NCBI GenBank assembly: GCA_904063045.1
Contig: CAJFCJ010000006.1
Coordinates: forward strand, 3,860,408 to 3,924,407
Origin: Dimorphilus gyrociliatus
Taxonomy: Eukaryota; Animalia; Annelida
Direction: 5' to 3'
Length of the DNA stretch: 64,000 bases
Both the position numbers and the translations under genes were made by a program. How positions within the stretch are numbered: the first letter of the stretch is position 1; every line of letters begins with the position of its first letter. Under the pieces are notes generated by a model, which searched no databases, was not told the origin of the DNA, and saw only the letters and a list, made by a program, of their open reading frames with translations. Positions 3,264-41,000 of the stretch are shown one piece after another.

Positions 3264-5634
3264 TTAACTTTCATTTTCAATTTTCAATCCCTTCATACGT
3301 AGGAACGGTTCAGTTTGTGGCTCTCTGCCAAGGAAATTTTTCAACATCAAATCAGCATCCTAAAAATAGAAAAAAATAGTTTATAGACTTTGCTATCAGT
3401 GACTTATATGTCTAATTTTTTATTTCAATACTTACAATACTACCACCAGGTTTTAGTATGCAGTCTCTGTAAGACTTTCCAACTTTTTCAGAAAGAATTC
3501 CTTCTTTCAGAAATCTTGAATAGAACATATCGGAGCTGAAGACTTCACTCCACATATAGCCGTAATATTGAGCATCGTAACCGCCTGATAAATGTTCAAA
3601 CGTGGCCGGCATATTAGTATTTTCTGATGGCTCTACGCATACAAGTTCCTTTGATAATTTACTAAAGATCTCAGCTGTGTCAACTTTGCTTAGGGAGTGG
3701 ATGGTTTGATCAAATGTACCAAGAAGGATTTGTCTCATATTAAAATAACCAGCATTTGCCAGACGAGAGGCAATCAATTTTTCAATTACTTCCTTAGGAA
3801 TTGGTTCCTTCGTTTTATAATGTTCAGACATAAGTCTGAGAGGGTCCTCGTGCCAACACCAGTTTTCCAACATTTGAGAAGGAGCTTCAACAAAATCCCT
3901 TTCAACAGAAGTTCCAGAGAAAAGAGCGTATTTTGCTCTAGCACAAATGACATGCATTACGTGACCAAATTCGTGGAAAAATGTTTCAACTTCATCATGA
4001 GTTAGTAAAGCCGGTTTTTCAGGTGTTGGCTTAGTAAAATTGGCCACCATTGCAGCAACGGCAAGTTGTCTTTTTCCATTTTCGAGATCACAGCCCTTCT
4101 GTAGAGTAAAGCATGCGGCATGACCATATTTTCCTGTTCTTGGATAAAGATCCAAGTAGAAATAACCCAACAATTCACCGGTTTCTTTATCTTTCGTTGC
4201 AAAAAGAGTGACATCATTGTTCCAAATAGGTGGATTTGGAATTTCCTCAAAAACTAAACCTAACAGGTTTTGGTAAATTTCTAGCAACCCTTTAGTCACT
4301 TTTTCCATTGGAAAATACTCTTTGAGAATATTTTGATCTACAGCATATTTTTTTTCTTCAACTCTTGTCATGTAATATCTTGTATCCCATCCATCGATTT
4401 TCCCATTAAATTCGTAGCCATACTTTTCGCATTCTTCTTTCTTATACTCCAAAAATATTTTCATTTCATCATCCCTGAGTTTCGTTAACTTGCTTGCTAA
4501 ATCTTCTAAAAATTCTTTAACTCTTTCTGGATTCTTAGCCATACGCATTTCTAGGACGAAATGTGCATGTGTCTTGAATCCGAGCAATTTCGCTCTTTTA
4601 TCGCGAAGTTCTACCAACTCTTCCATAATCTTTGTATTTGGTTCCATGCAACGGCTATTAAAAGCGTTTTCCAACTTCTTTCTTGTTTCGGGAACTCTTA
4701 CAAATTTCATACAAGGGAAGTAGTGCGGATACTTCAAGGTAACTTTGTATTTTCCATCATCACTTTTATCCAATGATTCTAAGAAATCATCAGCAGCTCC
4801 AGCCATCTCTTCTTTTGTGAACAGTAAAACGGTGTCCTCTTCACCTAAATTTTTACTAAAATCAATGCTAATTGCGCTCATTCTTTGCTTGATCTCTTTA
4901 ATTTGTTTTTGTACATCCTCGGCGAGATGTAGACCGTTCCTCTTACCAAATTTTATCAATTTGGACAAGTACCTCTCGTCTTCCCCCGTTAGAGGTTGTT
5001 TCAAATTCTTTTCAACAGCAACCAACGAGTCGAAGACATCTTGTCTCATGGAGATCTCAACATCAAAATCTGATAACTTTTTATCAGCTGCACAACTAGC
5101 ATCTCTTATTTCTTTATCTGGTGAAACGTGCTGAAAAAAATCCAACTGACTTCTTTGGGTGTCGTAAATAGAGTCAAGTTTCGCTAGACGCTACAAATAA
5201 AACAAACGAATAATATAAATTTTGCTTTATTTATATGATCAATAGCTCAAGCTTACAGTGCAGACGTTGTCAATGGTAACTTCGGCGTCGCTTAATTTCC
5301 CCACTTCATCGTAAACTTGTTTTGCCATTTCTATCAGTTCGTCCGCTTTTTTTTCTATTTCACTTGCAGATAAATCCCACCGAAGTTGTACATTATCGAT
5401 TGGATATTTCATCTTGTTGGAGGTATGGAATTGCTTATACATGGGTAGCGAAAAAGGCTGACAAATATTAGAAGGTATTGAAAAGTAACCGGAAGATATG
5501 GGCAACGTCGCTGGCAGACGATTTGTGTGGTTTCCTGGTAGATTCGATTGCCTCACACGTGAGAAGTTTCTCGAAAGAATTTTCTGGGCTAAGCGTCTTG
5601 TCGAATTGAAATTCAATCTTACCAAGTTGAGCAT
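3264..5634 (-). CDS. THOP1/NLN: Thimet oligopeptidase / neurolysin (peptidase M3A)
   Basis: HEFGH zinc motif, RDFVEAPSQMLENWCW and GYDAQYYGYMWSEVFS. The last exon reads DADLMLKNFLGREPQTEPFL...ENES* with the stop at 3264-3266. First ATG is at 5634 and opens an Arg-rich presequence. Confidence 0.93.
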
Positions 5635-9944: not shown

Positions 9945-11892
9945 TTACTGTTTTTTACGACCTCTTTCTCCAGGAGCAGCAACAAATTCCTCTTCTTCTT
10001 TAACTTCGGTTATAGGTACAATTTTCGGACCTCTTTGAATACCTAGTTTAATTTTCTCTAATTGTTCAAAATAAGATAACTTTTCTTCTCTATTTTGCAA
10101 TTGAATTAGTTTCTCAGCTATTTCTTTCTTCTCCTGATCTACTTTCATTGCTTCTATTTCTTTTTTAAGAGATTCCTCTCTTATCTCATTCCAATTTTTA
10201 TATAGCTTTTCCTGTTTTTCAATGTCGTATGCCTCAGTTTGGGCTATTGTATTTTCCATCAATTTTTTAACTTCCTTCTCCAAATCCAGATCTTCTAGTT
10301 TACCTTCTAATTTGAGGTTATTATATATTTTCTAAAGGTACAGAGAAAAAATGTTTTATGACTTTTCAATGCAATTTACGATTACCATACATACATTAAA
10401 TTCTTGAATATATATTTCTTTTTCTTCAGGCCGGACGTAAGGTATAACGTCTTCTAATTTAACAACTCCCAAATCTTTTTTTGGAGGATCCTCTTTAGTC
10501 GGGCAATTCTCAAGTAGGATTTTAAAAGCTTCCATCTTAGTAAAATTATGAAAAAATATTAAAAGCGAAGAATTAAAAGGATGGGAATTTTAACATATAA
10601 CTTACCGCTTCTATAGCAACAACTTTTTCACTATTATCTGCCTTTAATAATTCTAAACCTTGATCAAATTTTTCAAATAAGCCATGTCCTATTAGTTGAT
10701 AACTTCTACCAAGTATGCTTTCGATTTCTCTTCCTAAATATGTGAAGGTTTTTCCTAATAGCCACCTAAAGCATAAATATAATTTATAATCTTATGCCAA
10801 TACAATCAAGTTTACATGCAACTTACTGTTCATTTTTTATGTCAAAATGACCGTCAAACCATGGAGGCGTTATAAACCCTACTCTGATCCATTCTTCCTC
10901 TTCTTCATCATCGTTCTTATCTTCAACGTCATTTTCATTTGTAGCTGAAAAGTCGTGTTTTCTCCAGTGTTGATCACAGCCATGCAGAGACAAAATTCGA
11001 CTAATAGGATGAGAAAATTCTTCTTGGAGCATTAATTGATAAGCAACCTGAGCAGCGCCTAAAAATATTTTTCATTAGTCTATTAAAATTTGAGCGAATG
11101 AAAGGTAATTACTATGAAAATCTTCATTGACAATAAAATGATCTAAGAGTTGACTGCTTGTAAAATCATCAAGAAAGATTCCATAATTGATCTAGAATTA
11201 CATTTAAAAAAGTCATTTGATTTATAAAAAAATCATAAGAAACATACTGGATCTTGTAAGATTTTGAATAATCTTTCAAATTCCCCAAATTTAATAAGTG
11301 CTCTAATAAAGGCATGATTAGTTGATTCTTTTACATGAACTGCTTCAGCTGTATGACGAAATTTATAGAATAATGTTTCCATATAATCCAATTGCATAGT
11401 ATCGATTAGCTCCAATTTGTTAGCCAACTGTTTAAAAGGAAATAAGATAGAGTATAATCTTTAAATTAAATACTATTATTACTATATCCATATCGACAGA
11501 TGCAATTCGAATTCCCTTGTCTAGTTTTGATTGAATCTTGAGGGCGAAATCCTCTAAAAAGTTGTATAAAGTTCATAAAATTTCTTAATTTAACAATTTG
11601 AACATTTAAACTAACCAGTGCTGATATCTTTTAATATAGGGGTTTCCAATCGTTTGGCCCATGAATTCGTGCACGTATAACTTGGTGATAGATATGTTCG
11701 GTACTGATTGCCTAAAATGTAATATCGATCACTGTATCTACTATGTATACTTTTGTGCAAAATCGTTAGCATTTTGAACTTTTAGAATATAATTATTGAA
11801 AAGGTATAACCCTAATAATGCTTACTAATCGAAACTTTTTTCGTTAATTTAGACAATGTAATAACATTAGTTAATCCTCTCCGGCAAGCCAT
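9945..11892 (-). CDS. MRPS27: Mitochondrial ribosomal protein S27 (PPR-type), multi-exon
   Basis: Basic presequence MACRRGLT..., then YLSPSYTCTNSWAKRL, LFYKFRHTAEAVHVKESTNHAFIR, YGIFLDDF and QLMLQE, matching the recalled MRPS27 motif order; charged coiled C-terminus. Confidence 0.8.
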
Positions 11893-38024: not shown

Positions 38025-41000
38025 TCAATATTTTGGGCTTGACGAAAAACACAGTTTAAATGTGTAAGGAGCCTTTCCCTGTGGATTGTCGATAGCAGCA
38101 TGATTACCGAGAGCAAGAGCTTCTAAAGCGTCCTCTACAGATTTAAATTCTAACACGCCCGAACTACTACGGTCACTTTTCGGTGGAAATTGTTTTACAG
38201 AGACTGGTGGAGATATCTGTAGATTATTGAACAGTCTGATTATTTCCTGTTCCCCAACTGACGGTGGTGCGTTATAATAATGTAACACAGGACAAGGGGC
38301 TTGAATGCGGTTTTTCTGAGCTGCTTCACGAGTTGAAAAACGATTGTTGCGATGCGAAGAATAGTCTACATATGAAGGTGATCCATCATGTAACTCATAA
38401 TTACTATGGACCTCTAGCAGATACGGTTGTTTTGATTTGGCTATTTGTAATTCTTGACCAAAAAGGGACGCCTTATTCAAATTTTTTGCCGCACGATCAC
38501 AACTAGAAGGATCGTTCATTTGAATCATAGCTGTTCCTTCCTTTGATTTCAAAAACTTCACCCTTATAACATTACCATAAAGGCAAAAAATATTGAAGAC
38601 TCGCTGGCAAGTCATGACTTCTGGATTTAAGCCATAAACCATCAGAACACAACCTTGGACTCCTGGTGGCCCATCATAACCTCCGTACTCAGGTCCATAT
38701 CCTGCACCCATACCTCGATTATCACCCATAGGCATGCTACCACCCATTCCTGACTGAGGACCATAGTCGTAACCACCACCACCACCACCGCCGCCGCCTC
38801 CACCTCCTCCTCCTCCTGCCCCACCGCCTCCACCGCCATATTCTATAGGGCCATTTGGTCCTCGAGGTCCCATTCCATATCCTCCACCTGGCGGAGGTCT
38901 ACTATCATTTTCTAACGGCGGTCCATATCCAGGTCCTCCTGGACCAGGAGGTATGTTTGGAGGACCTGCTAGGCCTTGAGATGAACCTTGATTTCCTAAA
39001 GGAGAAAATTTAATTTTTGATATACGATATCCCTTGTTATAAGTAATAAGACACGATTAACAAAGACTGCTGCGTTACAATTTTAGTCAGGTTAAAAGAT
39101 TTACAGAAAAACTTACGTCCACCATAAGGAGTTGGTCCAGATCCATACCGAGGTTCCTGAAGAAGGGGTGCATTTCCGCGATGTTCATTTTGACCTAAGA
39201 TGATGTGATATTTATTAATTTCCTTTAATATATTAGTTAATTAATTGATACATATGTGTACTTAAAGGAAGAGCAAGAAGCACAAACACTTCTCTTTAAT
39301 GATACATCTGAAAATACAGTACAAACTAAGGGTTCCCCGACTCAACCGTAAAAAAAAAATAAATAAAAAATAAAAAGCAAAAACATTCCAAGCTACAAAA
39401 CATTTCTGAATTTTGTGGGCTTAATTTTAAACATTCCCCTTACAGAACCTCCAGTAAAACTTTTAGTTTGCACTGTAAGAAGAGTCCACCCTCACAGATA
39501 AATCTAGTTTGCTTTCCGAAGAACAATGAGAATAGAATGTGTTACAACATCGTTAATTCACATTATATTATTAATTCGAAGAGACTTAATTATCGATTTG
39601 TGCCTAACCAAGGGTATTTCGTTAACTCTTGGTGTAGGTGAGTGGTGCAATGCGTCAAAAACACATTACCATCCATCTCCAATAGAATAGAATTTTTAAC
39701 AGTTTATTTTTCAGCAGCTCCAGCAATTTTTCATTCTTCCAAAGTTCCTGTAAAAGTTCCGGCAAAAATGAGAAATTGTTTGAAAGCAGTTTATAGCCTG
39801 TTTGTGACTGCATGTTGTTTCTTGAATGCACTGTATACTTTTGTAATTATGAGTATACATGTTGTTACTGTGAATAGTTTTCTTTCTTTGTTTCTAACTA
39901 TTATATCTTCTTATGTCTCTTCTTGATTTTGGAGAATGTACTACATCAAAAGTGAATAATGTTCTAGTGAAGCAAGGTATTAGTAGAACACGCCTAAAAC
40001 TAGACTTGACAATGCAGAAATTTACACATGTTTACATTATATGAAATATACATGAACGTCATGTTGTGCAACATGTGAACGCTGTATGTTGTTGTTTTCG
40101 AAAAAAATGCATCTTATAAATAATAAAATACAAGTTATAGCTTACCTAGATTAGGATTTGTATAATCATAGGATTCGCTGTCATTCTTATAGACGTTTAA
40201 TTTTGTTGGCTGTAATTAAAAAGAATTAAGTAATATCGTCAATTTTTAATGAAAATTTACCTTGGCGAACTCGATTTTTAAAGTGCAGCAACCAGAATAA
40301 ATGTCTGCACCATTCAAAGTTTTTTTTGCTCGTCGAGCAGATTCAACAGAATCAAACGTAAAGATAGAATTAAGGTTTAAATGTACGGAAAAATTTAAAT
40401 TTTTTTAAACTAAGTGGTCTTTTTTTTGCAAAAAGGATATTCTACCATAGATTGCACTCCATTTTTTTTGAACACCACGATTCTCAGTACTTTTCCGTTT
40501 GCATTGCAAATTGTATGCATAACATCCTAAAAATGAAAAAATGGCCAATTGACATTTCATATATTTCAAAAATGATATTTATCTATTACCGTTGTTATTG
40601 GATACTGAGGATTTAAAATAGTAAACAACAACACTTTATTAGCGTTCCCTTCTGCATCAGTTTCGTTAGGTGGTCTCTGAATTCTTTTACTCGTAGAGTA
40701 ATTAAAAAAGGCTGGTTGATTGGCTACATATATTTGATTTTGCTGAGCATAGTCAACACAACTGATGGCTTCTTTGATATCCTTTAAAAGAATATTGTTA
40801 TAAACTACGTTATTACTAGAAGATATAACACACGTTAAATTCGACCAAAGCTTGACGTCTATTAGGCATCATTATAATATATTGTATTTCACCGAATCGT
40901 TGAACAGCTTCGATCAAATCATTTTCAACGACCATATCACTTAATCCCCGAACGTGAACGACTTTTGATGGATTTGTGTTGTGCCGCTCTTGTCGGACTT

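Follow-up and report, generated by a model that had tools for sequence, protein, structure and literature searches.

A sense-strand CA-dense cluster in the vertebrate-equivalent intron of the Dimorphilus gyrociliatus hnRNP L gene, with a candidate poison exon downstream

The 64-kb window considered here, that is, the whole stretch of 64,000 nucleotides that was analysed, comes from the annelid Dimorphilus gyrociliatus and carries the hnRNP L gene of this animal on its minus strand. Poison-exon feedback is a main way in which splicing factors hold their own levels constant, and most studies of it concern vertebrates. Intron 6 of the Dimorphilus gene contains a CA-dense cluster on the sense strand, and the presence of a conserved cluster of this kind in the equivalent intron of other animals is well supported. 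The most valuable result, also well supported, is that this CA-rich element of the vertebrate-equivalent intron can be extended to six further animals. Downstream of the Dimorphilus cluster lies a 78-nt segment with in-frame stops, which is a plausible working poison exon.

An HNRNPL-type module of alternative splicing coupled to nonsense-mediated decay (AS-NMD) would be housed in an hnRNP L orthologue, and the gene considered here is the single such orthologue of D. gyrociliatus. Mapped by eye, it runs on the minus strand from 41264 to 38025 and consists of 8 exons with a coding sequence of 1728 nt, or 576 codons. The exons were searched one by one rather than as a joined product; the Pfam families RRM_5, RRM_10, and RRM_8 each match single exons, and the proteins matched by exon 8, from Lingula, molluscs, and other animals, carry the name hnRNP L, with identities of up to 59%. 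A search of the animal's own genome found one copy, the next matches being 35% and 29% identical. (The assembly comprises 77.9 Mb; the published genome is 73.8 Mb, PMC7854359.) No Dimorphilus protein was present among the matches listed for exon 8 or for a 343-aa open frame around it, nor in the best 120 of 894 matches to the N-terminal half of a snail orthologue, a query chosen so that a truncated product of 232 aa would pass the length filter.

Intron 6 stands apart by its size. At 951 nt, it is 14 times as long as the median intron of the genome (66 bp, PMC7854359), and the other introns of the gene measure 188, 52, 63, 83, 51, and 121 nt. Thus, the original prediction, which had singled out the intron after the ...YDYTNPNL exon as the longest of the gene, holds. 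The intron is single-copy in the genome, has no match in Rfam at E values up to 1, and contains neither a repeat nor a credible open reading frame on either strand. Since it is single-copy and lacks an Rfam match, it is not a transposon or a known RNA gene.

The position of this intron was compared in 7 animals: Dimorphilus, the bird Sarcoramphus (L008), the annelids Paralvinella (L009) and Owenia (L012), the oyster Saccostrea (L006), the amphioxus Branchiostoma (L013), and an annelid-like metagenome contig (L053). In all seven, the exon that closes the second RRM ends in phase 1, 1-6 codons after NPxL, and the interrupted codon is Gly in every case except L053. The exon after the intron carries a PLL..P.Y motif in the compared loci, a motif of exon 7 that is common to all orthologues. 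The vertebrate site lies three codons further (NPNLSGQ-G vs NPNL-G), within a linker of variable length. Together, these features support treating the position as equivalent to that of vertebrate HNRNPL intron 6, after the DYTNPNL exon, where the HNRNPL-type module resides; the original claim that this is the same intron as in vertebrates is upheld by the phase-1 site that follows NPxL in the bird as well.

The CA-dense cluster occupies 300 nt of the intron and includes both of the CA tracts that had been pointed out beforehand. The hand counts of about 12 and about 14 CA in these tracts turned out to be exact (12 in 40100-40021 and 14 in 39880-39801). Over its 300 nt, the cluster has 37 CA dinucleotides, compared to 21.5 +/- 3.2 in mononucleotide shuffles (z = 4.8), and 70% of its C residues precede an A. 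The number of TG dinucleotides is only 16, indicating that the CA bias is strand-specific. No other 300-nt window on either strand of the 64 kb is as dense in CA (37 vs 34), and at window sizes of 100 and 200 nt the cluster is top or tied on the sense strand. Counted per 100 nt along the intron, CA occurs 11, 7, 10, and 14 times, then 2 times at the candidate exon, and then 6, 6, 3, 5, and 3 times. The cluster ends about 50 nt upstream of the candidate exon, which directly follows it, and the bird shows a like spacing; an upstream CA cluster, as in the HNRNPL-type module, is thus present, though without enrichment of the tetramers CACA and ACAC. Within 281 nt of the sense strand, there are also four copies of ACAACAT, a motif that has 16 matches in 128 kb (both strands of the window). 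In the cluster, it may be these copies that form the unit of binding.

The same arrangement recurs in the other animals. In all six full loci, intron 6 holds the 300-nt window that is richest in CA among those on both strands of the locus: the counts, each followed by the best value elsewhere, are 37 and 34 in Dimorphilus, 44 and 42 in Paralvinella, 43 and 38 in Owenia, 39 and 36 in Saccostrea, 45 and 40 in Branchiostoma, and 45 and 34 in the bird. In L053, the one sequence denser than the intron peak (42) is a (CA)n microsatellite at a distance of 2 kb from the gene, and at small window sizes the Paralvinella peak is exceeded by a partial microsatellite elsewhere. For a randomly placed peak, the chance of falling in intron 6 was taken as the length of the intron divided by twice that of the locus, and the product of these values is 1.5e-8. 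A stricter null, in which only the sense-strand introns of each gene are considered, gives about 5e-4 (a hand estimate). Four window sizes and three motif sets were examined, a freedom of choice for which some correction has to be made; the finding withstands it. Every locus peak is strand-asymmetric and lies above the mononucleotide expectation (z = 2.3 to 6.3). The survey of the same intron in other protostomes that had been called for finds the CA peak in Paralvinella, Owenia, and Saccostrea. The bias is shared by animals whose introns have no sequence similarity, which suggests that selection has acted over a long time on composition and position only.

In three of these animals, Dimorphilus, Paralvinella, and the bird, CA density falls at an exon-like segment. 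The bird intron has a CA-rich run of about 700 nt that ends at a stop-rich exon of 132 nt (3417-3548). The end of this exon (..CDAGSQ) matches the starts of two fish open frames (P0177 and P0085), which begin inside the poison exon and run into the next exon, and on this basis the bird exon is identified as the vertebrate poison exon. In Paralvinella, the density drops just before a 22-nt exon (10883-10904) that is annotated as spliced to the next constitutive exon; the annotated joins in L009 are 10198^10883 and 10904^11347.

The candidate poison exon of Dimorphilus, 78 nt in length, is read in the phase set by exon 6 as g/GA ACT TTG GAA GAA TGA, or G-T-L-E-E-stop. The TGA is separated by 61 nt from the 3' end of the segment, in agreement with the distance of about 60 nt given originally, and by 139 nt from the last junction, a position from which the vertebrate rule would predict nonsense-mediated decay. 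The segment contains a second in-frame stop, a GAAGAA purine run, and no CA dinucleotides at all. Splice-site matrices trained on the window gave noise, and a simple consensus count was used instead: donors were scored by matches to AG/GTAAGT and acceptors by pyrimidine count, with the weakest sites of the six real GT-AG introns of the gene as thresholds. By this measure, the "strong sites" of the original prediction overstate the donor, which matches 3 of 6 consensus positions. The acceptor is an ordinary one, with a pyrimidine count (12 of 18) like those of the real acceptors of the gene (10-14). In favour of the segment, the sense strand of intron 6 has only 3 candidate exons, compared to a mean of 11.9 in random pieces of the same length. 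All three use the acceptor at 39747; no other acceptor of the intron has a usable donor at a distance of 30-250 nt downstream.

In a metagenome scan of 80 loci, all cDNA-like contigs that span the junction show the constitutive join, and none includes a poison exon. Several contigs (L005, L007, L011/L030, and L035) were set aside as uninformative, since they have constitutive forms or frameshifts in Gly-rich low-complexity parts rather than at intron 6. One annelid-like contig from a JGI metatranscriptome (L010, positions 1-1001) still contains some 1 kb of the equivalent intron, with a CA-rich part, ahead of downstream exons that are fully spliced. In Paralvinella palmiformis (L009, 6394-13280), annotation splits hnRNP L into two models at intron 6 in both gene copies; the second model takes its start from an ATG within the CA cluster and includes the 22-nt exon. 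The models broken or cut at intron 6 include P0255, P0257, P0127, and P0184 (Tegillarca granosa). In fish-like sequences (L017 and L018 from metatranscriptomes, P0177, and P0085), an in-frame 36-nt piece, DADGDGNWNNSQ, lies between the two exons. This piece is the 3' end of the poison exon of vertebrates, and it seems that an inner acceptor turns part of the fish poison exon into coding sequence.

The most likely function of the cluster is that of a binding platform for the gene's own product, and from the arrangement of the intron we infer the following circuit. Intron 6 would have kept an old sense-strand CA cluster, to which hnRNP L would bind when it is abundant, thereby promoting the use of the acceptor about 50 nt downstream. 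The 78-nt exon would then be included. With its TGA and with more than 1 kb of sequence left downstream, the resulting message would be unproductive and probably degraded by nonsense-mediated decay, and this decay would close a negative feedback loop on hnRNP L. We judge the chances of this full chain, from binding of the cluster through inclusion and decay to feedback, to fall just short of even. For the original proposal of a module composed of CA tract and poison exon, this means that the two parts have fared differently: the CA density is above chance, but the exon as such is not.

Several observations weigh against the feedback loop. The lead of the cluster at 300 nt is small, and with windows of 150 nt it no longer ranks first. 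CACA and ACAC, which are high-score motifs of hnRNP L in systematic evolution of ligands by exponential enrichment (quoted in PMC3384337), occur 4-5 times in the cluster and 6-8 times elsewhere. Across phyla, there is no nucleotide similarity between the introns; shared 11-17-mers are non-collinear and look like chance. (A 13-mer in common with the oyster intron, CATGCAGTCACAA, was rejected because the other shared 12-17-mers lack collinearity.) The donor, GTAATG, is weak, no better than the poorest of the gene's real donors. Equally good candidate exons number 11.9 on average in random 951-nt pieces of the window, 98% of which have at least one, and most random AT-rich 78-mers would be expected to include an in-frame stop. 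Short introns are favoured by splicing in D. gyrociliatus (PMC7854359), and inclusion would yield two introns of 398 and 475 nt. Finally, the module does not occur everywhere: only about 70 nt lie between the DYTNPNLG and PLLQEPRF exons in L090 (1175-1374), a genomic contig to which the cDNA-like contigs L019 and L020 are related, so that neither a CA cluster nor an extra exon could be accommodated. The module, if ancestral, has been lost in this lineage.

The abundance of equally good candidates and of stops in random sequence, together with the ordinary frequency of CACA and ACAC, would be expected if the 78-nt segment were a chance AG..GT pair that is never used. The long intron would then be kept for an enhancer or an alternative promoter, its CA-richness playing no part in hnRNP L self-feedback. 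The genome does have 944 intronic peaks in the assay for transposase-accessible chromatin with sequencing (ATAC-seq), in host introns that are larger than non-regulatory introns (PMC7854359), and one of the gene models annotated in Paralvinella has its start within this very intron. A DNA enhancer does not, however, predict a strand-asymmetric excess of 37 CA over 16 TG, nor does it predict that the bias should recur in the same intron of three phyla and a vertebrate without sequence conservation; moreover, the same bias in vertebrates is a known binding platform of the gene's own product. We consider this explanation unlikely. In another explanation, also unlikely and a little more so, the cluster is a real hnRNP L-responsive element whose output is something other than inclusion of a cassette. 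Removal of intron 6 might be slowed, resulting in its retention or detention, or the segment might serve as a terminal exon ending at AATAAA and give a short mRNA for RRM1-2 plus GTLEE. Such outputs are compatible with the conservation of the CA cluster and with the breaks of the Paralvinella and Tegillarca gene models at intron 6, and long introns are more often retained in D. gyrociliatus (PMC7854359). The L010 contig, which keeps the CA-rich part of its intron, would also fit, but one retained-intron contig, from a species unknown, is weak evidence. The AATAAA comes 22 nt downstream of the TGA, and the donor is closely followed by a TGTGTTTTT run, so that use as a terminal exon is a live alternative; an AATAAA is nevertheless expected by chance in AT-rich DNA, a terminal exon would still require the acceptor at 39747, and the vertebrate precedent is a cassette exon.

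Another RNA-binding protein, one that recognises ACAACAU(G), might bind the CA-dense region instead, which would make the circuit one of cross-regulation rather than autoregulation. This seems quite improbable. The crowding of four ACAACAT copies into 281 nt, three of which read ACAACATG, would speak for such a protein, as would the lack of enrichment for the canonical hnRNP L tetramers. Yet the motif was chosen after inspecting the sequence, and exact matches across species are confined to short, non-collinear k-mers. In addition, ACAACAT consists of two CA dinucleotides three bases apart and is therefore compatible with hnRNP L itself.

Returning to autoregulation by hnRNP L, the CA feature of the mammalian loop recurs in the same intron of annelids, an oyster, an amphioxus, and a bird, and an hnRNP L autoregulatory loop ancestral to bilaterians thus becomes a concrete and directly testable hypothesis. 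That the circuit as a whole, with a CA cluster and an unproductive splicing output in one phase-1 intron, is ancestral to bilaterians is a tentative proposal, to which we would give something like one chance in three. If it is true, the circuit has been kept for more than half a billion years despite complete turnover of the surrounding sequence and a compact genome of 74 Mb with introns of 66 bp on average, and it would rank among the most ancient autoregulatory splicing modules of conserved position that are known for any hnRNP. The presence of the module in this intron would also be the reason why automatic annotation breaks there in at least two other species. At 951 nt in all, the Dimorphilus module is very small and would be convenient for minigenes.

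Table 1. Positions of exons, introns, and proposed regulatory features of the Dimorphilus hnRNP L gene in the 64-kb window
Feature	Position	Strand	Remarks
Exon 1	41264-41190	minus	
Exon 2	41001-40834	minus	
Exon 3	40781-40590	minus	
Exon 4	40526-40441	minus	
Intron 4	40440-40358	minus	83 nt, phase 2
Exon 5	40357-40261	minus	
Exon 6	40209-40146	minus	PTKLNVYKNDSESYDYTNPNL + first base of Gly codon, phase 1; ..YDYTNPNL end
Intron 6	40145-39195	minus	951 nt, GTAAGC..TTAG
CA-dense cluster, proposed hnRNP L binding platform	40098-39799	minus	includes both predicted tracts
ACAACAT (four copies)	40092-40086, 40067-40061, 39865-39859, 39818-39812	minus	three read ACAACATG
Acceptor region	39767-39748	minus	TTTTGCCGGAACTTTTACAG/, 12/18 pyrimidines, CAG/GA
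Candidate poison exon	39747-39670	minus	78 nt, acceptor CTTTTACAG/GA, donor ATG/GTAATG
In-frame TGA	39733-39731	minus	
AATAAA	39708-39703	minus	inside candidate exon, overlaps second stop, 22 nt after TGA
In-frame TAA	39706-39704	minus	second stop
Donor	39669-39664	minus	ATG/GTAATG, 3/6 consensus positions, equal to real donors of introns 2 and 3
Exon 7	39194-39117	minus	(G)QNEHRGNAPLLQEPRYGSGPTPYGG, 78 nt, phase 1 to phase 1
Exon 8	38995-38025	minus	

Elsewhere in the gene, intron 4 is a U12-type AT-AC intron, which follows ..MV-GA. Its 5' end reads ATATCCTTTT, and a branch-site-like CCTTAAT is located 11 nt before the 3' end, TAC/G. Saccostrea, Branchiostoma, and the bird have ATATCCTT at this position, and Paralvinella has GTATCCTTT; Owenia and L053 lack the intron. 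Unspliced read-through of this U12-type intron accounts for the 'MVEYP..' stretches found in several database proteins, including a 'low quality' bird model.

A full-text search of the literature found, among the papers covered, none on the module outside vertebrates, which is not proof of novelty. A Drosophila paper on nonsense-mediated decay was rejected as a report of the module, as it yielded only the word 'smoothed' and an entry in the reference list.

Among known systems, the closest is the autoregulation of mammalian HNRNPL, in which exon 6A (also called exon 7) and a CA cluster lead to AS-NMD, as described in the passages of PMC7547044 and PMC6885243 that cite Rossbach et al. 2009. These passages and the reading of the bird locus bear out the mammalian loop on which the original prediction was modelled. 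The likeness extends to the orthologous gene, to the equivalent phase-1 intron after the DYTNPNL exon, to a sense-strand CA cluster that ends shortly before an exon-like segment, and to the length of that segment, which is divisible by three and includes in-frame stops (78 nt in Dimorphilus and 132 nt in the bird). In contrast to the run of about 700 nt in the bird, the Dimorphilus cluster covers about 300 nt and is not enriched for CACA or ACAC. There is no sequence similarity, the Dimorphilus intron lies three codons earlier in the alignment, and this animal has no hnRNP LL paralogue to cross-regulate.

PTBP1 exon 11 offers a second parallel, in that a four-RRM hnRNP binds to its own gene's pre-mRNA, and an unproductive isoform results. 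In this sister RRM family, however, the unproductive form arises by NMD-coupled skipping with a frameshift rather than by inclusion of a poison exon, the motif is pyrimidine-rich, and the intron is another one. The poison exons of SR proteins, such as SRSF3 exon 4, are likewise stop-containing cassettes that are promoted by the gene's own protein and serve homeostasis. These exons are reported to have arisen more than once (Lareau and Brenner 2015). SR proteins belong to another family and act through exonic enhancers, whereas for hnRNP L the same intron and the same cis feature are found across phyla.

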